Positions 9,292-56,397 of a stretch of 64,000 bases of DNA are shown piece by piece. A program made the position numbers and the translations under genes. The notes beneath the pieces were generated by a model that saw only the letters and a program-made list of their open reading frames with translations, made no database searches and was not told the origin of the DNA. Source of the stretch: Lama glama. Its lineage: Eukaryota. Location: assembly GCA_028534125.1 (NCBI GenBank), contig CM052849.1, positions 3,224,001 through 3,288,000 on the forward strand, given 5' to 3'. The first letter of the stretch is position 1, and every line of letters begins with the position of its first letter.

Positions 9292-9386
9292 TGGGGATAG
9301 CTCAGTGGTAGAGTGTGTGCTTAGCATGCACAAGGTCCTGGGTTCAATCCCCAGTACCTCCATTTAAACAAAAAAAGAAAGAGAAA
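9292..9386 (+). mobile_element. tRNA(Ala)-derived SINE (Vic-1-like, camelid)
   Basis: A box tagctcagtgg, B box ggttcaatccc, A-rich tail; similar copies at 17946 and 48703. Confidence 0.85.
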
Positions 9387-17945: not shown

Positions 17946-18110
17946 GGGTGGGAGGATATAGCTCAGTGGTAGAGCATGTGCTTAGCATGCACGAGGTCCT
18001 GGGTTCAACCCCTAGTACCTCTGCATAAGTAAATCAGCGCCTAATAAATCAATACCTAATTCTTCCCCCCAAATTTTAAAAATAAAGTTAAAAATTACAA
18101 AAAAAATTTT
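17946..18110 (+). mobile_element. tRNA(Ala)-derived SINE (Vic-1-like)
   Basis: A box tagctcagtgg, B box ggttcaaccc, A-rich tail, near-identical flanks aaggcataaaa/aaggcatgaaa as a probable TSD. Confidence 0.85.
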
Positions 18111-25191: not shown

Positions 25192-25691
25192 NNNNNNNNN
25201 NNNNNNNNNNNNNNNNNNNNNNNNNNNNNNNNNNNNNNNNNNNNNNNNNNNNNNNNNNNNNNNNNNNNNNNNNNNNNNNNNNNNNNNNNNNNNNNNNNNN
25301 NNNNNNNNNNNNNNNNNNNNNNNNNNNNNNNNNNNNNNNNNNNNNNNNNNNNNNNNNNNNNNNNNNNNNNNNNNNNNNNNNNNNNNNNNNNNNNNNNNNN
25401 NNNNNNNNNNNNNNNNNNNNNNNNNNNNNNNNNNNNNNNNNNNNNNNNNNNNNNNNNNNNNNNNNNNNNNNNNNNNNNNNNNNNNNNNNNNNNNNNNNNN
25501 NNNNNNNNNNNNNNNNNNNNNNNNNNNNNNNNNNNNNNNNNNNNNNNNNNNNNNNNNNNNNNNNNNNNNNNNNNNNNNNNNNNNNNNNNNNNNNNNNNNN
25601 NNNNNNNNNNNNNNNNNNNNNNNNNNNNNNNNNNNNNNNNNNNNNNNNNNNNNNNNNNNNNNNNNNNNNNNNNNNNNNNNNNNNNNNNNNN
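25192..25691. other. Assembly gap (500 N), probably hiding TCN2 exon 2
   Basis: Round-number N run. Exon 1 ends in phase 1, exon 3 starts in phase 2, and I found no exon-2 sequence in the flanks. Confidence 0.85.
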
Positions 25692-37647: not shown

Positions 37648-40039
37648 CAAAGTTCAAAAATAGGCAAAACTAAGGTATGACGTGGAAAGTCAGATTAATG
37701 ATTGTTTTTGAGGGACAGGAAGTGGAAGGGTGCACTACCGGGAGGGCTCCTGGGTGCTGGTCATCTTCTGTTTCCTGAGCTGGGTGCTGGTTATATGGGT
37801 GTATTTGGTTTGCAAAAAATAATCAAGCTATAAATCTATGACTGGTTGCATTAGTCTAGATTCTCTAAGAGCAGATGCCAAATGGGATAAAATGTGCATA
37901 GGACTGACTGGGGAAAATTCTGAGTGTAAAGGGAGAGGGAACCAGAGGAACCAAGCCCTGGTCTTTCATTATCGGTCTGCAGGGCACTCACACAACTTGG
38001 CAACAACCAATCCACCTTCTTTATCTTCATAGGCATTGTTCACCACTCTTCAGTATCCTTCAAATACCGCAATCAGTGCACCTGCCACAGACCTTCCCTC
38101 CACTCGGATATTTTCCCAGGTCACCACCAGTGAAATCTTTTGCAACTAAGCTGCCACCTTGCACCATGGACTCTCTATGCCCACCTACCAACTGGGCTGG
38201 CACCTCTGTGCTTGCCAAGCTGTGAGTGAGCCAGTTTCAGATGCCCATTTTATCACGCGTTTAATGGTCTAAGGACAATTACTAGTACCATTTGTATTAC
38301 CTATGTTCCGCAGTAAGCAGATGCCAAGACAGGGTGAATGTGCAAAAGTTTTTTGGGAAAACGTCTATGAGGGAAATGGAAGGGAGCTGGAAGCTGGGAA
38401 AGCAGGAGTCAGCAATGTAGGTCTGACCCCTGTTCCCTCTGCAGAGGGCCTGAAATGTGCATTTCATGGCTAGCACATTTGTCCACTGTTCTGTACGCCT
38501 GTTATATTTCAATAACAAGATCTTCAAAGTCAGTAAGGAGGAAAAATTTAAATAGACAAGGAACAAGCTTAGACTTTTGGACACAGGTAGAACCTTTCAC
38601 TCAAGGGCTCCTGAGATATTCCTAGGTACCAGGTGCTTCACATGGTCATCTCACTTACTCCTCCCTTGAAATGTGGCTACTGTGATGAAGGGACTTAATT
38701 TTTACTTGATTTTATTTTAAATTTACATCGTCACACGTGGCTGGGGGCCATACTGGATGATGCAGGTTAGAGGCTTCATTCTTCATTATTATTACCCCAG
38801 TAACAATCCCAACACCTTAATTTTTCCAGCACTTCATGGTTTACAAAGCATTTTACTATATTACTCTTCCATGATCCTCATGGCATTTCTTTTCCAAGAG
38901 TCTATGGGGAAATGTAATCTCAGCAATGAACAATGTGAAAAGGAAATTAAGAAAAGTTGCAGTTGTCACCTTTCCCGATTTCAAAACCTACTGCAAAGTG
39001 ACTGTGAGCAAAACAGTGTGGCATGAGGATATACGTATAGACCAATGGGACAGAATTGAGAGAATGGAAATAAACCCTCAAATATACAGTCAGGTGATTG
39101 TTGACAAGTTACCTGTGTCATCATCTTTTTTTCCCGCTCTCTTCAGAGACGATGTTCATACATTTATAAAACTGTTCAATTATCTCGTCACATTATGCAT
39201 TCCACCCTGGGATTCCGCTGACCCCCAAAGTGTTTTTTTTTTGTTTATCTGCATACATAATTCAGTCTTTGTGCTGTGACATTCTATGAGTTTTGGCAAA
39301 TGCATAGGGTCATATATCATCCCAGATAGAATAGTTTCATCACCTAAAACAACCCTGTGCTTCATCAATTCAACCCTCCCTCCTCCCTCCCATTGACCTT
39401 CTGTCAACCATTGATCTTATAACTGTCCTTAGTTTTCCTTTTCCAGAATGTTATAAAACTAAAATCTTACAATACGTAGTATTTGTAGACTGGCTTTTTT
39501 TTTTCACTTAGCAAATATGCATTTAAGATTTTCCATATCTTTTCATGGACGATAACTCATGAAACATACCACTGTGCGTTTACCCATTCATCGATTAAAG
39601 GACACCTTGGTTGCTTCTAAATTTTGACAATTATGAATAAAGCTGCTATAAATATTCCCAAGGAAGTTTTGTGTGAACATTTAGTATTCACGTCAATTGA
39701 GCAAATACCTAGAAGTGTCATTGTTGGGTTGAATGGTAAGGCCCCATCTATCTTTGTAAGAAATTGCCACACTGCCTTCCAAAGTGGCTGTACCACTATT
39801 ATCCATTTTTTAAAAACAATTTAAAAATATCTAGATCGACGACTCTATGCAGTTGGTGTTGCCCTCATTTTACACGCGAGGAAGAGAGGTACAGCGAGGT
39901 GAAGTGGCCTGTAGCTTGGCAGTAAGACCAGGTGTGTCTGCCTGCAGCCTGGGTTCTTCACCACAATGGTATTGGAGGATCGGTATTTCACAAAGCATTC
40001 CGTGAGTGGACGGCTGTAATGGTTAAAAATCTCTTCCCT

Positions 40040-41150
40040 TCAGCCCGGAATCCGGCGGCGGCGGGAGCGCTGCGAGCGAGAGGTGCGGAGGGGAGGGCGG
40101 GCGACTCTGGCAGTGACTGTGGCGGCAGTGATCGCCCCGCTGTGGGAGGCTATGGGAGCGCGCGCATCCTCTGGGTATCCAGCGCGCGGCGGCTCGGAGT
40201 GACCTGCCCCGGTGCTGTAGGGACAGGCCATGGAGCAGTTACTCGCTGAAGACCCCCGGGACCCACTGGTCTTGGCCCGTGGCTCGCCGTGCCTCTCCCA
40301 GGCTCCGAGGGCGCGGAAGAGGAGCCGTACTCCGAAGCGGGAGTAGCAGCATGCGGACAGGGGGAGGCGCTGGATAGGCGCGCCGGTGGCTCCCTTGGCT
40401 AGGGCTCTGCTTCTGGACGGCGGGCTGCGGCTGCCCGAGGTAAGCGGCGGGCTGAGCGAGCGGGGCGATTGAGCGGGACCTGCAACCATGGCGCTGGCCC
40501 CCGAAGTTACACCCTGCACCTCTCCGCGCGCCGAGCCCAACGGGACGGGACTCGGGCGGAGGACCTCCGAGGGGACCACTGCCTCCCACCCCAAGTTCGC
40601 GATCATCGTCAATCCTACAGGTTGCTGGGACGGGGCCCCTGCCCTTCCTTTACTCTGGTCGCTTGCTCCATTTTCCAAGCCCTCCCCAACTGCTGCAGAC
40701 TGGAGTCCCCACCTCTTCACTCCAGTCTCGCTCTCCCCAGACCTCTCCACTTTCTTCCGAGGCTAGATCGTTCGTGGATGGGCGTCTGTAGGGGTGTCTG
40801 AGAGTTCCTGGGGAGAGGGGCCGGCTGATGGGAGTCTCTGCAGGGGAGGCTTGACTAGAGAGGTGCCTTTTCCCTTCGGTAAGCAGCATCCAGGCTGAAG
40901 TCCTCCAAGCTTGACACCCCTCCAGCGACACCAGCCTGAGGTCCTAGGCAGCAGTGGGCTTCCTTTGGAGGAGGCCGTGTGTGTACGGGGAGCTCGGGAG
41001 AGCTGCGTGCACCATTCGCTTTTAACTGCGCCTGCAGTGCCCAGCCGGGTCAGCAATTGGTCCCAGGCGGCTCACCCGGAGCCTCCTCTCCCTGCCCGGT
41101 GCCCGACCCAGCTCGCGAAAGCGGTGTCCGCTGAGCGGCAGGGAAACCAC
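40040..41150. promoter_or_regulatory. Orphan CpG island between TCN2 and PES1
   Basis: Abrupt shift from AT-rich repeats to CpG-dense unique sequence; not at the 5' end of any recognised gene here. Confidence 0.8.
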
Positions 41151-44120
41151 TGCTTCTTTCTGACTTAGAAACGTAGACCCCATTTTTCCTGGATCCTCTG
41201 GATTCCAGAAGAGTGAAATTTTGCAGCTGGTTTCAGCTCCACCTTGAGTGAAGACAGAGCACATCAACTTAAAGATAAAACCCGCAGACTTGTTTTGAAG
41301 ATGATCAGACACAACGTGACATATAGCTTTACCATGGAAATCGTCAGGGAGCTTCTCCTTCCCGCTCTTCTTTACCTTTTCCTGGGTGTCATACATTAGG
41401 CTTAGCATTTGTAATTGCATCAAATGATTCACCTAATGCTTGTCTGGCGAGAGGTGAAATTGATCTTTCCACCTCACCTCTGCTCTGCTGGCTACCTTGA
41501 ACATATTGTGAGTAGCTAGGAGACAGAAAAGGGCAGAAAGGGGAGAGGACGATCAGAAATGAACCAATATAATCTCATTTTTATAAAAAGCTACCAGTGT
41601 GTTAAAAGGAGTTGTGCTGTCTGAAATGAACAATTTAAAAAAAGATGGATAGAGGCTTTCCCTTTTATGATCCTATTCAGTGGCTATTTACATTTCATTT
41701 CCTGTGAAGTTTTTCACCCCCCACAATGGAGCAGGTTTTTTAAAAAGCAGGAAAGGTTTAAAAATGAGCTTCAGGGATTGACCACACTAGGTTACAGTGA
41801 AGCAGAGTTCTTTTGCTTGCTGGAAGAAGCACCAGCTTCAGCCATTTATTTTACTACAGAGGATGCCTCCTTGCAAAGTCAGCTCTGAGTTGTTTTTAAT
41901 ACACTGTCATGGGGGAAAGGGGGCCTTTTCTTTTCTGAATGTTGAGCTAAATGTCTGAGTCCCAACTTAACTGTTCTCTGCTGAATACCTAATGGTGATT
42001 GACTCCCTGTCCTGACCCCTGGAATTTGGTTGATGGGGCTGTCTTGAAGCCAGCTTGAAACCAGAGTGAAGGGGACCTGCCAAAAGCCTCTTAGATGGAG
42101 CTTTGCTGGCTGTGAAACTAAGGCTAGCACCTCTTGTCTGCAAGCTGTTCTTCAAAGGACTCCTAGAAAACATACTGCACACTCTGCAGGCTTATTTACA
42201 ACAAATGTCTTGCACAGATCGTAGTAATGTTCAGGACACATGGAATGGAGCAGTACATCTGACTAATATTTCCCATGTAATATTTTACTTTCTGGGGAAG
42301 GAAGCCCATGACCCTTAGCATCTGTCAGAGGTTCCCCAAGAAAGGAACGGTAAGCAGCCTGGAAATCTTGAGAAGCCCATGCACCTGGCTTTGGACAGTT
42401 GGATGCAATGGGAGTTTTCAGAACAAATGGTGTGTTTCAATGTTCCTTAAGTTCTCCCAGCCCAGGAAGGTTCCCATTCCTTAAAAGCCAGAAGAGGTGC
42501 ACTCTGGGGACATGTTTGCTGAGTAGTCTTACCACACTCTCAGCGTTGGCCCTACATTGTTCTTACATATGCAAATAATTTTTTTTTTTGTTCTGAAAAA
42601 TAAAAATCTCTTCCCTTTACAGAACTAAAATCTGCCTCACTTGGTCCTGGAGTCACATTAACAGTTTCCACAAAACAGAGAGAAGGGAACTGAGTGTTGG
42701 GTGCCCCGGCCTGTCCACAACTCATTAGGCAGTGGCATGTGATTTCAGCAGCAGGCCCTGCGACAAGGCTGCCTAGTCAAAAGTCCGTTTTCTACTACTC
42801 ATCAGCTGAGTGACCTTTGGGTGAGTCTCTTCCCTTCCCTGAACCTTAGTTTCCTCACCTATAATACCTGGTACCTATTTTGAGTTCCAGACCTGAAAGT
42901 ACAATTACTTTCCTAGACACCTCCACCCGTGTCTTTCACTGACCCCTCCAAATCAACATGAGCAAAACAGGGTACCTCCTGTGCAGAACCAGCTACAAGA
43001 TTTGCAAGGGCGCAGCGTGAAATCAAAGTGCAGAGCGCCTTCTTAAAACATTAGGAAGAATTCAAGACAGCAGTGGAGCAGTAGATCAAGCACAGGGCCA
43101 TGGGTGACTGGGCCGGCCAGGTCACACGCCCCATGACACTGGCCTTGCTCCTGTGTTCCTTTGATGAACCAGCCACTGCTGTCCCCTTAGGTCCTTCCCT
43201 CTCCTCTTGCCCGGTCACACCCTCCATGCTCCCATCATAATGGACTTCTGTCATTCTCTGAATGTCCCAAACTTTTGCCTCTGGCCTGGATAATCTTTCT
43301 CCTTTCTCTTTGCCAGCCCCTCTCCTTTTATCCTCAGATCGTTTCTGAAACACTGCACGGTCTTCTGCTGTGAGCACCACATGACCCTAGTTTTCCTCAC
43401 ACCTCTCTGGCAAATTCCTTCCAAGTCTTCACAAGCTCGCTGTCCCCAACCTGGTTTTCATTTTACTCCATTTTTCATTGTTTGTAGAATCACTAGGTTT
43501 TTATTTTGTTTTAGCTTTAATTGAAAGTAGATAATAAAAAATGCATTGTTCAAAACAAGCACGTTAGTCACTGCTTAAAGTCTGTATCCGTCTCTAAAGG
43601 GTAAGTTCTATGACCATGAACTTGGGTCCGGTCTCATTCACAAGGACCTCAAATTTAAAATTTAGAGGCAATCTCCAAATGGAGTTGAGAGGCCTGAAGG
43701 AAGAAAACATCAAACAACCTTACAAAATTTTGTCTACTTCCTAGACCACACCACCTTGGTGTGACTATTTGTATAAATCTTGTAATTATCCTTTGAGGAA
43801 CACAATAAGGAATCTGCGTACATATATTAAAAGCTCAAACGCGTTAAACGTACATTTAAAAATACACCACGAATTCTGTAACTCTACTTGGCGTTTCGTC
43901 AGTTTTCAACCTACCGCTAAGGCTCAGAAAGTAAGTGGTCTCTCAGGCCTCTCCACCTATGTGAGGATAAAAGCCTGCTTTTGCTCTATTTATTCCAGTA
44001 TCAGCGAATGGACCAAAGGAAAAGCCAACGGCCAGCGGCGAATCGAGCGCAGCCTCCCTTACCGCCCCTGGTGGCCGCTTCTCAAGTCAAAAGAACCAGG
44101 TTCCAACGACACCAGCAACC

Positions 44121-44134
44121 GTTTCCGTGGCAAC
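44121..44134. promoter_or_regulatory. RFX X-box
   Basis: GTTTCCGTGGCAAC (reverse complement GTTGCCACGGAAAC), close to the palindromic RFX consensus GTTGCCATGGCAAC. Confidence 0.7.
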
Positions 44135-44244
44135 GCAATTCACGCGGCCTCACTGAGGAGTGCGGCTCCTCTCTGCATCCCAGAAGGCGCTGCGCTGCCT
44201 CTAAGCCTTCCGCCCCCTTCCATCCCAACATGCAATGGGGCTCA

Positions 44245-44252
44245 TGACGTCA
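44245..44252. promoter_or_regulatory. Full CRE (CREB/CREM site)
   Basis: Perfect TGACGTCA palindrome with its CpG retained. Confidence 0.65.
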
Positions 44253-44439
44253 AACGTTCGTTATCAGGATGATTATAGAAATGCCTGAATAGCCGCCTTC
44301 GCTTAAACATTAAAAATGTACGTAATAAGCTCATGTGTAAGAAAAGTCCCAAAGAGCGGCCTTAGTGATTTTTTCCAGAGGTTTTAGTTTTAAATCTTGA
44401 CAAGAAAATCCCATCTTTCCCTAGATTCTCTCAGGCACC

Positions 44440-44560
44440 TCCTTGGGCAGCCCGCGCAGGCCGGCAGCGTTGGGGACCTCGGGGTCCTAGGCAGGGCACA
44501 TGCGGGGGGAAGTGGCGCTGTCTGTCCGCGCGGCGGTTGTAAACCCTTCAGCGTGGAGCC
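44440..44560 (+). promoter_or_regulatory. PES1: PES1 core promoter / 5' UTR
   Basis: CpG-rich; E-box CACATG at 44497-44502 and ETS-type GGAAGT at 44508-44513, just upstream of the ATG. Confidence 0.65.
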
Positions 44561-44584
44561 ATGGGAGGCCTAGAGAAAAAGAAG
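44561..44584 (+). CDS. PES1: PES1 (pescadillo ribosomal biogenesis factor 1) exon 1
   Basis: gccATGg Kozak; MGGLEKKK|gtgaag; 24 nt. Confidence 0.93.
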
Positions 44585-45586
44585 GTGAAGAGCGAGAGGC
44601 CTCGGTGGGAGTGTCGGTAGGGGGGTGCTCCGGGATGTAAGAGACAGGACCAGCAGAGCCTGGGGACTGCTCCTTTCCCCAGCCTTGGTCCCTCGTAGGT
44701 GTAGAAGCGGCTGGGATCAATGCGACATGAGACAGTAGCCAGAAGGGGTCCAAAGGTGGGCGAGGGCGGCAGTTACTCCTCCGGTGAAATCCAGGATAGA
44801 ATTCTAGAGTAGAGCTGTGTAAGAGAGTTGAGGTTACCAAGCAAAGCTGCACGCCCCCAGTCAGGCCGAGCCAAAAGACCGTTTACTGAAAGACTGATGA
44901 ATATTTCGTAGAGCCCACCATGATGTCCATTTTATCATTTCTAAAACTTGTTACTCCCTTTTCTACTGAACCAGGCCCTGTCCTAGACACGGGGGATGGA
45001 GACATAAACAATCAGATGTGGTCCCTGCATTCCCCAAGCTCATTTTCTGGTGGGGGAGATGGACAGTAAAGTAAGCAATCAGATAAGATGATCACTGACA
45101 AGCCTGGCAGGGGAAACTAAGTGCCAGGAATCTTAGTTGGGAAAGGGTCGCTGTGTGCAAGGAATCGGAAGGACGTCAGGATGGCTGGGGTATAGTAAAC
45201 CAGGGGAAGAATGGTATCTAGTGTGGTTGGGGTTGGACAAGGACCAGGTCATACAAGGCCTGTCAGGCACAGTGAGGAGATTGGCTTTTATTCAAAATGC
45301 AGTAGGAATCAACTACTTCTAAGTGCTTCGCATAGCACCAGATCCACAGCAACCCTGTGGTCCCTGAATCATGCAGATGTATGTGTCCTCTGTGCTGACA
45401 GCTGAAGATAGTGCAGGAGAGCTCCTTCAGGCATGTGGGCTCCCTCCCCATGGTGTTTTTTGTCCCAGGAGCCTTTTCGCCACTTATCCAAGGTGATAGT
45501 TGCCTCTGGCATGAGGAATATCCAGAGATTGCTGTCTATCACTGCAATCATTGCTAATGGAGAATTGTTTTTTTTTCCTCCCCAAG

Positions 45587-46115: not shown

Positions 46116-47972
46116 TAGGCAGACCTCAGAGATACTGTGATTTGGTTTCACTGCAGTAAAGTGAATGTCACAGTGAAGCAAGGCATGTGAATGTTTTGGT
46201 TTCCCAATGTGTAAGAGTTATGTACTGTATTATATACTGTACCATAGTCTATTAGGTGTGCAACAGTATTATGTCTAAAAAGCAATGTCTTAACTTAAAA
46301 TATTTTGCTGGTAAGAAATGCTGATCGTTTTCTGAGCTTTCAGGGAGTCATCATCTTTTTTTACTCTTGGAGGGTCCTGCCTCGATGTTGATGGCTGCTG
46401 AGTGATCAGGGTGGTGGTTGCTGAAGGTTGGGCTGTGAGTGACAACTTCTTAAAATAGGATAACAATGAAGTTTGCTGCATTGACTGACTCTTCCTTTCA
46501 TGAACGTTTCTCTGTAGCACCCAGTGCTGTTTGATAGCATTTTACCCATAGTGGAGCTTCTGTCAAAATTTGACTTAATNNNNNNNNNNNNNNNNNNNNN
46601 NNNNNNNNNNNNNNNNNNNNNNNNNNNNNNNNNNNNNNNNNNNNNNNNNNNNNNNNNNNNNNNNNNNNNNNNNNNNNNNNNNNNNNNNNNNNNNNNNNNN
46701 NNNNNNNNNTAAGAAGCAGCTCCTCACCTGTTAAAGTTTGATCATGAGGTTGGCGCAGTTCAGTCCCACCTCAGNNNNNNNNNNNNNNNNNNNNNNNNNN
46801 NNNNNNNNNNNNNNNNNNNNNNNNNNNNNNNNNNNNNNNNNNNNNNNNNNNNNNNNNNNNNNNNNNNNNNNNNNNNNNNNNNNNNNNNNNNNNNNNNNNN
46901 NNNNNNNNNNNNNNNNNNNNNNNNNNNNNNNNNNNNNNNNNNNNNNNNNNNNNNNNNNNNNNNNNCCTCTTCAGAAGGCTTTCAATTGACTTTGGCCAGA
47001 TCTGTCAGAGGAATCACTATCTATGGCAGCTACAGCCTTATGAAATCTATTTCTTAATTAGTAAGACCTGAAAGTTGAAGTTAGTCCTTGATCCACAGAC
47101 TGCAGAATGGATATTTTGGTAGCAGGCATGAAAACAACCTTGCAGTTTCTATATCAGTATTTGCTGCTCACCCTTCTCCTCATGAACCAATCTCAGCTGG
47201 CATCACACTTTTTCCTGCAGCTTCCTCACCTCTCTCAGCCTTCATAGAATCAAAGAGAGCAGGGCCTTGCTCTGGATTAGGCTTTGACTTAAGGGGATGT
47301 TATAGCTCATTTGNNNNNNNNNNNNNNNNNNNNNNNNNNNNNNNNNNNNNNNNNNNNNNNNNNNNNNNNNNNNNNNNNNNNNNNNNNNNNNNNNNNNNNN
47401 NNNNNNNNNNNNNNNNNNNNNNNNNNNNNNNNNNNNNNNNNNNNNNNNNNNNNNNNNNNNNNNNNNNNAGCTTTCAACCTGTCTTGGCTCTCAATGTGCC
47501 TTCGTCACCAAGCTTAATCATTTCTAGCTTTTTATTTAAAGTAGGGGACGTGTGACTCTTCCTTCCACTTGAACACTTAGAGGCTGTTGTGGGGTTATNN
47601 NNNNNNNNNNNNNNNNNNNNNNNNNNNNNNNNNNNNNNNNNNNNNNNNNNNNNNNNNNNNNNNNNNNNNNNNNNNNNNNNNNNNNNNNNNNNNNNNNNNN
47701 NNNNNNNNNNNNNNNNNNNNNNNNNNATATTTGCGTGATTCATGGAGCCCCCAAAATTATTATAACAACAATTTCAAAGATCACAGATCACCATACCAAA
47801 TACAATAATGATGAAAGAGTTTTGAGATATTGTGAGAATTACCAAAATGTGATACAGAGACGTGAAGTGGGCAAATGCTGTTGGACAGTGGTGCCAGTAG
47901 AGTTGCTCAGCTCAGGGTTGCCTCAGACCTTCAATGTATAAAAAAAAAACTCCATAAAATGAGGTATGCCTG
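46116..47972 (-). mobile_element. Tigger1 DNA transposon (TcMar/pogo), with N gaps
   Basis: TA-flanked TIRs (taggcagacctc / gaggtatgcctg); minus-strand peptides SKCSSGRKSHTSPTLNKKLEMIKL and ERKSQSMQQTSLLSYFKKL match the Tigger1 transposase termini. Confidence 0.9.
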
Positions 47973-50940: not shown

Positions 50941-53341
50941 GTGAGTGTGCCTGTGGGGGGCAGGGGGGTGTGGGGGTGCGGGGCCGGTGCTCCCTCTCTG
51001 GTTCCTAGACAGAGACGAGAGAGTGAGGGGGGTGCTTCCTGTCCTGCAGAGAAAGCTGGGCTCCTGAGTGCTGGCCGGAGGGTGGGGAGTGTGTTGTGCA
51101 CCATTGTAACAGGAGCCAGAGCCCGCCTGACTCCAGACCTGCTGGCTGGTTGACCTTAGACGTGTTCCTTTACTTCTCTGTGCCCCAGTTAATAACATGT
51201 TTCCATGTTCTAAGCCTTGTCGTGAGGATCTAAGGAAAAAAAGCTTTAGAAGTGCCTGGTGGTTGGCCCTTGGGGTTTGCTGAGCAAACAGGGAACAGCT
51301 GTATCACTGGACTCCTCTGCCCCCCCATTCCCATCCCCGACCCAGGGCTGGGGGCTGCGTGAGATCTGGGGGTGAGCATTGAGTGGCACTACTTAGGGAT
51401 ACTGCTTCTTATTTATCTTTTTTTCAGACTGTGGCAATATTTGGCCGGATCCATTGAGAGAAATCCAGGGTTGGCCTCTGTATGGGGGGTGGTTAGCCTC
51501 TAGTCTCCCACAGGGTCCCCGTCAGGCTCCCCTCCTACTTACTATGCTGTGGGTCTGTGTTTGGCCCCGCTTTCTGCTGAGAGTTGAGCAGAATCTGGTG
51601 CCTCCGGTGGAGAGCAGGTGCACCAGCCTGGCTGGATGGTGGGTTTGCTGGCCAGGGGGTGGGTATCCAGGTTGAGCTGGTGGTCTGGGGGCCTTGGGAC
51701 CCTGCCCATTACTCTGGGCTGTTGGGGGCCCAGGCTGGAACCACGTCTTAGTGTGGAGCAGTGGTGATGTTTGGTGGCAGCCTGCGGTCTCTGTGGGAGA
51801 AAGGCGGGTGTGGTCCTCAGCCGCTGGCGTGCCCACTCCCTGGGGTGGGTGTGTGTGCCAGAGCCTGTGCTCTCCCCTTCCCCTGTCCTCCCTGCCTTCC
51901 CTCCTTCCTCTCTGGCCCTCCCTCTCCTTCCTTCTCTTTGATGTCCCACCCCTGCGCTGCTCAGACTGGTCTTTGTCCTCCCGGGTGGTGAATAGGGCCC
52001 TGTGGAAGCCGGCCTCCGCACAGCTGGCCCTGGGGATCAGGGGAAGGGAACAGGCCGCCCCTTCCTCCTTCCTTTCTGGCCAGCTCACTGCCACTGCTTC
52101 CTCTTAGCAGGAGGATGGGGGACCGGTCCTGAGTTGTCGCTGGGGCCCCAATATGCCCCCTCCCCCGGTGCAGCCAGTGCTGGGCACCCGGCAGCATGAC
52201 CCAGGCAGGTAGTGGGGGCCAGAGGGCTGCTCAGCACTGTGCTGGGGGGGAGTCGCTGCTCACGTGCTCCTGGGCGTGTTGAAGGCCCTGGCAGATGCTC
52301 GTGTAAGGACTGGGGGTCGTTGGGGGACAGATGGGGCACCTCTCCAGCCCTGCACCCCCACAGCCCAGTTGCTGCCTGATGGCAGGATGGAGAAACAGCT
52401 CAGTGTCACGGGCGCACAGGCACCGAAGGGTTATTGTGAACGTTACCAATTTTGACGTTGCTTGACACATCCTCCCATCCAGGTCCCTGGAGTTGGCAGG
52501 CCTCCCTGGTTTTGGGGGCGGTGCTGCTTAGGCATCGAGGCACTTTGGTCTCGGTCTCAGATCCTTGCCCTGTTTTGCTTTATCGTCTCCAAGGTTAAGG
52601 ACGAGCCCCCCGTGCCTCTTGCTTGCTCTGTGCTTCTGCCCCAAGCAGGCAGCTCTTCTGCCCATTTCTCCAGAGCTCCCTGGGGCTGAGCCAGGCAGCT
52701 GCCCAGCTCATCCCCGGTCCTCGGGTTGTGCCTTTGTCTCTGGCTTGGCCCCAGGGCAGGCTTGCTGGATTCTGAGTGTCTGTGCCAAGGCTGCTGCCAA
52801 GGCTTGTAGGCTCTGAGTGCCGTCCACCCACTGCCCCCACCCAGGCAGATGGACTGTTCCAGGGCTGCCTCTCCCAGCTGGGCCTCCAGGTGCTTGTGGG
52901 CTAGCCCTGGAGGCGACATTATACGAAAATTGTGGGATAAGTAATGGAGGAGGCACTAGCGGCCTCTGGAGGGACAGAAGTCTGACTTGCAGATTGAGGG
53001 GGAGAGCTGGGGCAGGGGAGGGGGGCGCCAGCCAGTCCTGGAAACATCGTGTCAAGGGCTTCCCTTTTCTAACACCTCTTGTCCCCTTTATGGCATGGGG
53101 ATCGGGCTCTGGCCTCCAGGACACCCCTAACCCTTGGGACCGTGTCTAGAGCCTCACTGGTGCCCAGAATACTCCTGGGTGGGGACATGCCACATGGCCT
53201 CTTCCCATGGGCAGAGCTCTGAAGACAGGGCCACCTTGAGTTGGGGGGTCCTGATCCTTGGGCAGGCAGAACCCCCACCCTGCCTGGGTTGTCAGTGCAG
53301 TCTTTGCACCCACACTGCTGATTTGCCTCCTGTGTCCCCAG

Positions 53342-53458
53342 CACCCAACAGACGTGGACTACAGGGTCATGGCCACCTTCACCGAGTTCTACACGACTCT
53401 GCTGGGCTTCGTCAACTTCCGCCTCTACCAGTCCCTCAACCTGCACTACCCACCCAAG
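53342..53458 (+). CDS. PES1: PES1 exon 7
   Basis: [39 protein letters not shown]; 117 nt. Confidence 0.96.
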
Positions 53459-53589
53459 GTAGGCCCGGCCCAGCCCAGCACCTTCTCCTCCCCCAAAGGG
53501 GCCCTGGCCTTTCTCTCCCCACATGGAGGTGGGGGCCGAGGTGGGAGCAGTGGGCATCCTTTTTCTCTGACCTTCCGCCTGCCTCCCAG

Positions 53590-53664
53590 CTCGAGGGTCA
53601 GCCCCATGCAGAAGCGAAGACCAGTGAGGACACTTATGCTTTGGACTCCGAAAGCTCTATGGAG
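53590..53664 (+). CDS. PES1: PES1 exon 8
   Basis: [25 protein letters not shown]; 75 nt. Confidence 0.94.
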
Positions 53665-53871
53665 GTGAGAGAAGCTGTCAGAGCACGGGCCCCGCCTCCC
53701 CCAGAAGGGTGGTTCCTGGTCTGGGGCTGGGAGTGGTCTCAGGGCTGGTCTTTTGAACCCAAACCTGCTGATATCCATCCCAGAACTGTCAGTGCCACCC
53801 CTGCCCCACCCCATCCATGCCCCCCGACAACCCCCCAACCTGCAAGCAGCAGCCCTGCTTCTTTCCCGCAG

Positions 53872-53958
53872 AAACTGGCTGCCCTTGGTGCCAGCCTGGC
53901 CCGCGTGGTGGTGCCCACGGAGGAGGAGGCTGAAGTGGATGAGTTTCCTGCCGATGGG
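53872..53958 (+). CDS. PES1: PES1 exon 9
   Basis: KLAALGASLARVVVPTEEEAEVDEFPADG; 87 nt. Confidence 0.94.
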
Positions 53959-54111
53959 GTGAGGACTGTGCTGTCTTTTAGAAGGGGCGCAGAGGCAGAA
54001 TGGGGAGGCATAAGGACTGGGAGTTAAAAGGAAGCTGGAGAGGCTCCAACCTCTGCGTCCAGTGGGGGTGTGGGTGGGGCTGACGGTATGAGCGACCCCT
54101 TGTCGCGGCAG

Positions 54112-54667: not shown

Positions 54668-54777
54668 GTGGGCCCCCGAGGCCCTCGTCTTCCTCCGCTT
54701 GTTTGGGTTTCTGGTTATAGGGGTCTATGTCAAGTTCCCTGCAGATGTGATGACTCTCTGCCTCTGCCCTGTGCCAG

Positions 54778-54962
54778 GTGCTATGTGCAGCCCCAGTGGG
54801 TGTTCGACTCTGTGAACGCCCGGCTCCTCCTCCCCGTGGCAGACTACTTCCCCGGGGTGCAGCTGCCCCCACACCTCTCGCCCTTTGTGTCAGAGAAGGA
54901 AGGCGATTATGTCCCCCCTGAGAAGCTGAAGTTGCTGGCGCTGCAGCGGGGGGAGCACCCAG
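54778..54962 (+). CDS. PES1: PES1 exon 12 (BRCT end)
   Basis: [14 protein letters not shown]...LPPHLSPFV...QRGEHP; 185 nt. Confidence 0.96.
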
Positions 54963-55391
54963 GTGAGGGGCCGGGCCGGGGGTAGGGGGCAGTGGGCAGG
55001 TTTCTCCAGGCTGTCCTTGGCCCTGGGCCTCAGCTGGCTGTTTCCCTTCTTGGCTATGAATGTAGAAAGCTCCAGAGAGCAGGACAGCAGGGGCATGAAG
55101 CCCTTTAAACCCACCTCTGGAATAAGGCTTAGGGGGAGGGCCGTTTGTGTTCTATAGTCAGGTGTTCTTGATGTTCGGAGTAGCTCAGCGGAATGGTCTG
55201 GAAGTTTACATAGGAGGCGACAGAGCTCAGGTGTCCAGAGCCTGGAGTTTCCTCTGTGGGGCAGTGCCAGAGGGGCCATGGTTGGGACAGCCCTGCACCG
55301 CCTTTGGACCATCCCTGTGGCCAAAGAGGGTGGTGCCCAGTGCCAGGTCTCACGCCACGGGGGAAGAGCAGAAGTCCTTGGCTGTTTGTAG

Positions 55392-55627
55392 GAAATTTGA
55401 ACGAATCTGAAGAGGAGGAGGATGAAGAGGACAATGAAGGTGATGGTGATGAAGAGGAAGGAAAAGAAGAGGAGGAGGAGGATATGGAGGCTGGTTCAGA
55501 AAAGGAGGAGGAGGCCCGTCTGATGGCCCTGGAGGAGCGGAGGATGGAGGCCCAACAGACAGCCCCAGAGGAGCGGAGGACAGAGGCCCGACAGACGGCC
55601 CCAGAAGAGCAGAGGACAGAGGGGAAG
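55392..55627 (+). CDS. PES1: PES1 exon 13 (acidic region with 36-nt triplication)
   Basis: NLNESEEEEDEED...EGK|gtaccg; 236 nt, phase 1 to 0. Confidence 0.93.
55511..55618 (+). repeat. PES1: Coding tandem repeat, 3 x 36 nt
   Basis: EARLMALEERRM / EAQQTAPEERRT / EARQTAPEEQRT. Confidence 0.92.
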
Positions 55628-55748
55628 GTACCGGAGAGTTGACTGGGGTCACAGCCTTGGCAGCAGCCCCCTGGCTGTCTTGGTGCCCATTTGGGGGTGG
55701 AGGGTGGTGGGCAGCCTGCCTCCACGAGTGTCTACCCTGTTTCCCCAG

Positions 55749-55910
55749 AAGCCCAGGGTGATGGCGGGCACGGTGAAGCTGGAGGACAAGCAGCGGCTGG
55801 CTCAGGAGGAGGAGAGCGAGGCCAAGCGCCTGGCCATCATGATGATGAAGAAGCGGGAGAAGTACCTGTACAACAAGATCATGTTTGGCAAAAGGCGCAG
55901 AATCCGCGAG
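55749..55910 (+). CDS. PES1: PES1 exon 14
   Basis: KPRVMAGTVKLEDKQRL...KIMFGKRRRIRE; 162 nt. Confidence 0.96.
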
Positions 55911-56397
55911 GTGAGCCTCCGACCTGCCCGAGTTGAGCTTCGAGGCCGCGAGCTCTCCCGGGCAGACTCGGGGCCTCTCTTAACCCTTTTCTGAGGTTGC
56001 TTCCTGGCCCGGCCCAGCGTCTGGGGCCCCCACCCAGGCCCATGTGGGCATCTTGGTGTCAGTGTCCTTCCTGCATCCGGCGCTTTCTGAGTCTGTGGGG
56101 TCCGGGGCCAGAGCCGTTTCAGCAGAGCCAACATGCTTTTATGAAGGAGCGCCTTACGGAAGTGCATACACCTGGAGGGACTACGGGAGGTTTTGGTTCA
56201 CCTTCTGTTTCTTTCTCATTCACAAAGCCACATACACTTACTATTTTTCAAAGAGTTTCATGCACACCGGAACTCTAATGGACGGCCTGAAAGCGACTCA
56301 GCTTTGCCCATGGGGTGATCCGTAGTAACAGCCGCCCAGGTTTCTTTTGTGCACGTAATGACATGGACATTATTTGGGGGGTGTGGTGCTGCATAGA

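Follow-up and report, generated by a model that had tools for sequence, protein, structure and literature searches.

A proposed gene between TCN2 and PES1 in Lama glama is probably non-coding DNA, with a conserved block that runs into an orphan CpG island

Introduction

Does the interval between TCN2 and PES1 contain an undescribed gene? The question is raised by a 64,000-nt stretch of the Lama glama genome (contig CM052849.1 of assembly GCA_028534125.1, positions 3,224,001 to 3,288,000 of the forward strand), referred to here as the window; all coordinates below are positions within it. A sequence-only reading had proposed that the minus strand from 44150 to 40040 carries a multi-exon coding gene, or a unitary pseudogene of one, starting close to PES1 and running into a large CpG-rich exon. 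If true, this would matter, as a mammalian gene missing from annotation next to one well studied in ribosome biogenesis, but the evidence is against it. The 40040-44150 interval is probably non-coding intergenic DNA of three kinds: the flank of the PES1 promoter, a stretch of filler, and a conserved block with an orphan CpG island at its end.

The TCN2-PES1 interval

By direct reading, the PES1 start codon is at 44561 on the plus strand. The coding part of exon 1 (44561-44584, plus strand) has eight codons followed by GT, with a donor score of 3.4 on the scale described below, and Pescadillo_N matches are found downstream of it on the same strand. TCN2 exon 1, including the signal peptide, is on the minus strand at ~27.6 kb (27.5-27.7 kb), and an upstream first coding exon of TCN2 was ruled out as an identity for the candidate block on the strength of this position. 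The proposed chain is on the minus strand and PES1 on the plus, so the two are head-to-head, as the sequence-only reading had it.

Some of the intervening DNA is repeat-like. A segment at ~42.79-42.87 kb (42790-42870, minus strand) is presumably a fragment of a MIR-like SINE, judging by eye against the MIR consensus; within it, at 42859 on the minus strand, is a donor-like tag/GTGAGG with a score of 5.5. An ORF at 39.62-39.82 kb, also spotted by eye, is one that we take to be L1-like.

The proposed exon chain

The motifs listed for the chain are all present on the minus strand: GCG/GTAAGG after 44063, ...ccttcag/ before 43693, an exon at 42592-42533, ...ttttaag/ before 42479, ttttctag/ before 42162, ATG/GTAAAG after 41333, CGG/GTGAGC after 41076, and GAG/GTCTGG after 40743. 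For the supposed coding part, introns of 90, 132, and 128 nt were given, which is correct, and local translation of its three joined exons (41432-41333, 41242-41076, and 40943-40743) does yield 156 stop-free codons.

Splice sites were scored with a rough PWM, uncalibrated on known exons, and were ranked against all GT and AG occurrences in the window. On this scale, the “coding” part has four acceptors, with scores of -6.9, 2.1, 1.0, and -1.2, and three donors, with scores of 1.7, 4.5, and -0.7. Three sites in the chain are strong and no others: the 44063 donor (score 4.1, close to the 98th percentile) and two acceptors, one at 43693 (10.0, the strongest in the interval) and one at 42592 (8.3); on the plus strand of the same interval, strong splice sites are equally common. 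The intron between 42533 and 42479 would be 53 nt long, which is shorter than mammalian splicing normally tolerates. The two middle exons (42289-42592, minus strand), on either side of this intron, have stops in most frames, and the donor after 42289 scores 0.1; they are most likely chance motifs.

Chains of three exons whose sites are no worse and whose open codons number 156 or more occur 216 times elsewhere in the window, occupying roughly 28 places, some 20 of which are outside known coding exons. At least 200 open codons are reached by 111 of them. As a gene model, the exon chain is no better than chance, and the comparison is a caution for other loci: GC-rich mammalian DNA can be expected to yield many by-eye splice chains of ~150 open codons per 64 kb.

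A stop-poor frame

The 156-codon ORF is obtained because the three “exons” share one genomic frame carrying merely four stops in the 464 codons from 41432 to 40040. The 90-nt intron 1 is itself open in that frame, and the proposed splicing therefore serves just to remove stops, three of the four being stepped over. An unspliced ORF of 136 codons (41022-41432, minus strand) covers exon 1, intron 1, and exon 2. In Markov simulations, this degree of stop-poverty has P = 0.017, and the frame is within the top ~1% of GC-matched windows in this respect, beside real coding regions.

Such a frame is one of the points in favor of an alternative, that 41.6-40.6 kb was a fast-evolving coding ORF with a single or few exons and expression in reproductive tissue, now decaying here as a unitary pseudogene. 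On the whole of the evidence, given here and in the next sections, we consider this quite unlikely. A stop-poor frame alone is insufficient for protein-coding status. The mean AF2 pLDDT for the 136-codon ORF is 38.9, which speaks against a decaying protein, and in the Atlas this ORF (recognition 1707) was without a usable match.

Searches for known proteins, domains, and RNAs

Queries from the window covered 40043-40612 or 40660, together with 40707 or 40743 upward, and consisted of exons and unspliced ORFs rather than the joined model. None of the exons or ORFs tested has a Pfam match, nor do three ORFs from relatives, P0004 and P0005 among these. No named protein came out of two word searches, of a region search that started from an ORF of a relative, or of HMMER run in full (1.84 billion representatives); the word search seeded with P0008 used its residues 84-185 only, and an exact cluster look-up took in P0005, P0007, and P0008. 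The sole matches were unnamed Logan/ENA ORFs from about six other lineages, with none from NCBI or UniRef, and the 136-codon ORF likewise has only unnamed ORFs as relatives. This lack of a domain or a named relative counts further against a decaying coding ORF. The most conserved stretches (described below), written as degenerate patterns, had no match in two scans of metagenome contigs.

At the RNA level, Rfam covariance models had no match at E values up to 1 in 38500-40660 or 40707-44600, and a snoRNA or miRNA host was ruled out on this basis. A retrocopy of a known gene was likewise ruled out, there being no protein match.

Conservation of the DNA and of the frame

Mapped to the window, the Logan/ENA ORFs of the other lineages cover 41423-40046 with frame switches, and the N-terminus of P0007 resembles the window, by eye, up to ~41.6 kb. 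Introns 1-3 are read through in these ORFs as translated sequence; the ORFs are therefore unspliced. Relative to the window, the frame path is -3/-1/-2/-3 for P0004, -3/-1/-3 for the P0008 clade, and -3/-2/-1/-2 for P0012, and P0005 is an ORF of 293 codons in frame -1.

Several features of these relatives favor a coding ORF in decay. In several other lineages the ORFs are open over 218-333 codons, and at both ends they are collinear with the window and in the frame of the proposed exons; in the P0008 clade the ORF is free of indels in 10 of 11 members, at 92-100% identity; and a single base separates the stops at 40946 and 40652 in the window from sense codons of that clade. Against this reading, the middle 85 codons are in different frames in two groups of lineages, the starts and ends of the ORFs vary between lineages, P0009 has a frameshift relative to its own clade, and another separates the window from P0001, a close relative. 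Ascertainment may also contribute: the protein collection shows only those lineages in which a long ORF is present by chance.

Substitutions give no sign of coding constraint on the proposed frame. Translation of one 201-nt segment gives an identity of 61-64% in that frame and 67% in another, so that in-frame identity is not above out-of-frame. At the nucleotide level, the window is 81.6% identical over 201 nt to DNA rebuilt from two overlapping frames of one lineage. Of the 37 differences in these 201 nt, 16 are at the first, 12 at the second, and 9 at the third codon position of the proposed frame; that is, in this one lineage pair there is no third-position excess of substitutions, a further point against a decaying ORF. 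In a still more specific form, the alternative would be an ORF of one exon, young or evolving very fast, within the conserved block that is 3-4.5 kb upstream of PES1. It would reach 333 codons in some mammals and be translated in their reproductive tissue, and a few point changes and indels would have disabled it here; this we regard as highly improbable.

Nor is conservation restricted to the exons, as the proposed gene would have it: the best-kept pieces are in introns 1 and 3. The first (41190-41312) includes intron 1 and its acceptor, and has nearly invariant columns in both alignments made (A1 and A2). In the P0024 lineage, His is found where the AG of the intron-1 acceptor requires Gln or Arg, and the acceptor AG is therefore not kept in that lineage. 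The second (40655-40745), inside intron 3, has ~92% translated identity to the P0018 lineage, dropping to 61-65% around it.

Taken as DNA, the segment from 40040 to 41600 is a GC-rich, apparently single-copy block that is conserved as nucleotide sequence and not as a reading frame, “conserved” here not being scaled to neutral divergence. The ORF mapping and the 81.6% identity over 201 nt point to its conservation, and the relatives' clusters, small and on few contigs, to a single copy. A multi-exon coding gene or unitary pseudogene with the proposed exons is not borne out: its supposed relatives share no frame, start, or stop, the third-position excess and the annotated match are lacking, and the pattern of conservation is not that of its exons.

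The PES1 promoter flank

The PES1 CpG-island promoter extends over 43750-44700 (CpG o/e 0.60-0.90, GC 0.50-0.55). It has a CRE (TGACGTCA) at 44245 and two GC boxes, one at 44067 and one at 44215, and the GC skew flips sign across it. The first exon of the proposed chain (44063-44150, minus strand) is in the upstream flank of this promoter, where the minus strand is G-rich. Most CpG-island promoters fire both ways, and the segment from 44.15 to 43.5 kb is probably a promoter flank of this kind, with bidirectional firing.

An early donor (after 44063) and early poly(A) signals are both present as motifs on the antisense side. Minus-strand hexamers occur at 43994 and 43505 (AATAAA) and at 43521 (ATTAAA), and a candidate second and last exon of a divergent transcript can be drawn at 43480-43693 (minus strand), from the strong acceptor at 43693 to beyond the hexamers at 43521 and 43505. 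With these elements, 44063-44150 on the minus strand may be the first exon of a short, divergent, two-exon transcript without coding function, which would be spliced from the donor at 44063 to the acceptor at 43693 and end at a poly(A) signal near 43.5 kb. Below this, from 43.5 to 41.6 kb, comes AT-richer filler with the MIR-like fragment, in which the middle “exons” are most likely chance motifs.

Possible transcription of the interval

Of the words of 39900-44700, 14-29% occur in the RNA-seq contigs of two or more studies, and RNA runs contain 19-29% of the interval. The largest shares are in “reproductive system” samples, which is a point in favor of the decaying ORF discussed above. In human, an lncRNA with the GENCODE clone-based name RP1-56J10.8 is on the TCN2 strand and overlaps a region at the TCN2 promoter, and PES1 is listed too among the genes overlapping that region (PMC11505613). 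The human lncRNA being on the TCN2 strand, non-coding transcription between the two genes on the strand of the proposed chain is already annotated in human.

Could the whole chain then be a spliced non-coding RNA, one that begins at the PES1 promoter and follows the minus strand as far as the CpG island? The good donor at 44063 and the good acceptors at 43693 and 42592 would suit it, as would the presence of up to 29% of the interval in RNA contigs and the human lncRNA annotated on the TCN2 strand. The sites farther downstream are weak, however, and one of the introns would be of 53 nt; five minus-strand poly(A) hexamers are on the proposed exon path, the first of them at 43994; conservation is highest within the proposed introns; and the acceptor AG of intron 1 is absent from one lineage. 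We regard such an RNA as very unlikely. Divergent promoter transcripts do not usually extend 4 kb through nine exons, and what our reading allows for at the PES1 end of the interval is a possible short transcript of two exons.

The orphan CpG island

At its other end, the conserved block runs into a CpG island of ~1 kb (39750-40750; GC 0.56-0.70, CpG o/e 0.73-0.89), an orphan in that the PES1 start is ~4 kb away and TCN2 exon 1 ~12 kb away, the island being upstream of both. The “large CpG-rich exon” of the proposed gene falls inside it, and a frame open for 240 codons, other than that of the proposed exons, ends at 40040. On the PES1 (plus) strand, the island includes a donor, gag/GTAAGC (40434-40445, the last exon base being 40439), which at 6.1 is among the two top donors on either strand between 39.0 and 44.7 kb, the other being at 43600 on the plus strand (6.3). 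GC skew is positive at 40001-40400. The donor at 40439 and the skew together suggest that transcription may initiate on the plus strand within the island.

A high CpG o/e over 1 kb indicates a long-term unmethylated state in the germ line, which is not expected of inert DNA. This bears on the possibility that nothing beyond the PES1 promoter is functional, the apparent conservation reflecting close kinship and the RNA words coming from genomic DNA carry-over or unspliced read-through. The 81.6% identity would fit neutral divergence within an order, and the RNA shares are modest; but a 1-kb island with a CpG o/e of up to 0.89 would be left without an explanation, as would the unevenness of conservation, with its two sharply better-kept stretches. 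We judge this possibility to be unlikely.

Under the preferred reading, that the interval is non-coding DNA ending in an orphan island, the conserved single-copy block from 41.6 to 40.04 kb would most likely serve as a regulatory island or as a second promoter. A PES1-direction transcript could start there, from an upstream position, or an lncRNA in the TCN2 direction, and the island could couple TCN2 and PES1 regulation. The island and the two sharply conserved stretches flanking it are of modest local interest, as the possible site of an alternative promoter or of the start of an lncRNA.

Comparison with known systems

The human lncRNA and a human gene symbol offer one comparison. RP1-56J10.8 differs from the present case in that the human region adjoins TCN2 instead of being 4 kb from PES1, and the two are likened by annotation, not by sequence. 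PES1-AS1, a symbol met as one entry in a gene list, is likened by name alone.

With unitary pseudogenes, the block shares a stop-poor frame here that is open over 218-333 codons in some lineages. It is unlike them in that no frame is common to the lineages through the middle, codon positions show no signal, and neither an annotated parent nor an annotated orthologue was found.

Divergent CpG-island transcripts are the comparison for the PES1 end of the interval: the first exon is on the strand opposite PES1, at 350-450 nt upstream of its start, and in the same island, and in this locus a usable donor is followed soon after by poly(A) signals. The chain as originally proposed, running for 4 kb through nine exons, is unlike them, and the short form would be a candidate member.

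For the other end of the interval, the comparison is with orphan CpG-island promoters. Unlike in that class, few classic promoter motifs were found in a motif scan here, the only ones being two GC boxes, and such a small number of hits does not carry an argument. Like them, it meets the usual criteria for a CpG island, is away from the coding first exons of its neighbors, and is conserved elsewhere.

Genomic Setting

The window is mammalian: Pescadillo_N matches span 48.2–53.6 kb of the + strand, Cobalamin_bind matches span 24.9–22.0 kb of the minus strand, and a TPT/EamA transporter, SLC35E4-like, is found at ~8.5 kb, also on the minus strand. As read from the sequence, PES1 exon 1 (+ strand) has an ATG at 44561 and its last base at 44584, followed by GT, and TCN2 exon 1, with its signal peptide, is at 27.5–27.7 kb on the minus strand. 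The gene proposed in the sequence-only reading (40040–44150, minus strand) fills the PES1-proximal quarter of the 16.8 kb TCN2–PES1 intergenic interval, and its claimed placement head-to-head with PES1, on the TCN2 strand, is borne out by these exon positions. The window has five runs of N (1104 N in total), at 25192–25691 (inside TCN2) and 46580–47726 (a PES1 intron). ARAGORN called two tRNA-Ala(AGC), at 9292–9363 and 17951–18024 (+ strand); since tRNA-like translations recur at ~48.7 kb, both look like tRNA-derived SINE heads rather than tRNA genes.

Proposed Exons and Splice Sites

All motifs and lengths listed for the proposed gene were found in place, and its three “coding” exons (41432–41333, 41242–41076, and 40943–40743) do join into 156 codons without a stop. 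They share one genomic frame (frame −3), and because the introns between them are 90 and 132 nt, the proposed splicing builds no frame, but merely skips stops. Intron 1 is itself open, giving an unspliced ORF of 136 codons from 41432 to 41022. From 41432 to 40040 the frame has four stops, at 41024, 40946, 40652, and 40241, the first three of which sit in proposed introns by construction.

Splice sites were scored with a rough, approximate PWM and ranked among all GT and AG dinucleotides of the window. On this scale the “coding” part has four acceptors, with scores of −6.9, 2.1, 1.0, and −1.2, and three donors, with scores of 1.7, 4.5, and −0.7; just three sites of the proposed gene are strong, one donor, after 44063 (4.1), and two acceptors, at 43693 (10.0) and 42592 (8.3). 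By the same approximate measure, 39.0–44.7 kb has eight donors scoring at least 4 on the + strand vs. six on the minus strand, and five vs. three acceptors scoring at least 6. At 53 nt, the intron proposed between 42533 and 42479 falls short of the length that mammalian splicing ordinarily needs. Both window strands were searched for chains of three exons whose sites are at least as good, with introns of 70–300 nt and an open path: 216 such chains reach 156 codons or more and 111 reach 200 or more, in some 28 places, of which about 20 lie outside known coding exons. With so many chance chains and such mediocre sites, the spliced ORF as such carries no weight.

Homology Searches and Frame Conservation

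Word searches found three proteins for the 136-codon ORF and two for a 190-codon ORF in the CpG island; a full HMMER search of 1.84 billion representatives gave eight matches at E ≤ 0.001, one of which (3633 residues) was taken as spurious for its low identity. All real matches are unnamed Logan or ENA ORFs: none is from NCBI or UniRef, none is named, and none has a Pfam domain. A region search with a relative's ORF (the part homologous to proposed exon 3) returned that ORF alone. Pfam gave no match in any proposed exon, CpG-island ORF, or relatives' ORF scanned, nor did Rfam on either side of 40661–40706. For the 136-codon ORF, AlphaFold2 mean pLDDT is 38.9, and Atlas gave a low recognition value and no usable match.

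The relatives' ORFs (designated P0001–P0027) represent about six lineages besides the window: P0001 and P0005, from a close relative (~89–90% translated identity); P0002, P0003, and P0004; P0007 and P0013; a P0008 clade of 11 sequences, with P0009 and probably P0006; P0011 and P0024; and P0012 and P0025–27. They contain translated proposed introns, and therefore derive from unspliced sequence. Placed on the window by ungapped tblastn, they switch frames along it: −3, −1, −2, −3 for P0004; −3, −1, −3 for both P0007 and the P0008 clade; and −3, −2, −1, −2 for P0012. P0001 shifts frame near 41.09 kb, P0009 equals P0018 over 83 residues and is frameshifted beyond, and P0005, an ORF of 293 codons, stays in frame −1 across proposed exon 3, intron 3, and the island. 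In multiple alignment, two lineage groups agree at either end but differ in frame for the ~85 codons in the middle, and ORF starts and stops vary among lineages. Lack of exon-restricted conservation had been named among the refuting signs; the best-kept columns fall in intron 1 and its acceptor (~41312–41190) and inside intron 3 (~40745–40655). In the P0024 lineage, a His at the intron-1 acceptor residue excludes AG there.

Over 40975–40775 (201 nt), the window and the P0018/P0009 lineage share 61–64% translated identity in frame −3 and 67% in frame −1. Being known in two overlapping frames, that lineage's DNA could be rebuilt almost unambiguously; it has 37 differences from the window (81.6% identity), of which 16 are at codon position 1 of frame −3, 12 at position 2, and 9 at position 3. 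For this one lineage pair, that is the opposite of what a constrained coding frame would show. Taken with the frame switches, the lack of a named homologue, and the chance chains, it leaves a multi-exon coding gene unsupported.

Frame −3 nonetheless stands out as unusually stop-poor. First-order Markov simulations give P = 0.017 for four stops in 464 codons, and among GC-matched windows of 1393 nt just 1% are equally poor, at four loci that include two real coding regions; the figure is inflated by selection, the block having been chosen for its openness. A decaying or lineage-specific single-exon ORF is retained on this account as a minority reading. Very long open frames also run across and antisense to the PES1 3′ half (53131–54024, + strand; 54758–56150, minus strand), and in the antisense frame stops are as sparse as in the block studied, an illustration that no coding on that strand is needed for such openness. 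A frame −1 TAG in the window (40763–40765, minus strand) is a Ser codon in P0005, whose ORF has 293 codons vs. 240 in the window: long ORFs appear and vanish easily here.

CpG Islands and Possible Promoters

The locus is best read as three parts: an antisense flank of the PES1 promoter, unconstrained filler, and a conserved non-coding CpG-island block (40040–41600), with a likely promoter or regulatory function. One CpG island is at the PES1 start (43.75–44.7 kb); the stronger, at 39.75–40.75 kb, is an orphan, with GC up to 0.70, o/e up to 0.89, and a CpG-rich shoulder to ~41.2 kb. What had been taken for a large CpG-rich exon from 40614 is this island. GC skew is positive on the + strand at 40001–40400, and the + strand donor gag|GTAAGC after 40439, inside the island, is among the interval's two top-scoring (6.1); these motifs suggest that the orphan island may fire towards PES1.

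The minus strand is G-rich at 43.8–44.2 kb, and a compact two-exon divergent transcript could be drawn there from motifs: the 44063 donor, the 43693 acceptor, and a pair of poly(A) hexamers (43521 and 43505). Overlapping that donor is CCACCAGGGGCGG (44063–44075, minus strand), the CTCF core motif minus one G, so that what looks like a donor may belong to a PES1 promoter site bound by protein. A full CRE, TGACGTCA, is at 44245, with GTTGCY half-sites at 44119 and 44134 (minus strand). At the AT-rich edge of the conserved block, TATAAA occurs on both strands (41582/41585), and a strong donor-like gag|GTGAGG (6.0) comes next on the minus strand, after 41478; 41478–41585 could be a small first exon, or chance. 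Two degenerate-pattern scans of metagenome contigs for the best-kept stretches of the conserved block gave no match.

RNA and Annotation

Words sampled from 39900–44700 were found at 19–29% in RNA-seq contigs labelled “reproductive system metagenome” (one study), 14–17% in metatranscriptomic runs of a second, and 86–87% in DNA-like runs that carry one species label. At most ~4% can come from PES1 exon 1 with its flank, which leaves some 1 kb or more of sequence upstream of PES1 in contigs derived from RNA.

Entries in a methylation study give the genes overlapping one human region, at the TCN2 promoter, as TCN2(+), PES1(−), and RP1-56J10.8(+), the last classed as a lncRNA in its supplement (PMC11505613); the symbol PES1-AS1 appears as a single entry in a gene list. 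Going by these entries, non-coding transcription on the TCN2 strand is already annotated in this intergenic region in human. By annotation, RP1-56J10.8 resembles the gene proposed in Lama glama in strand and intergenic region.
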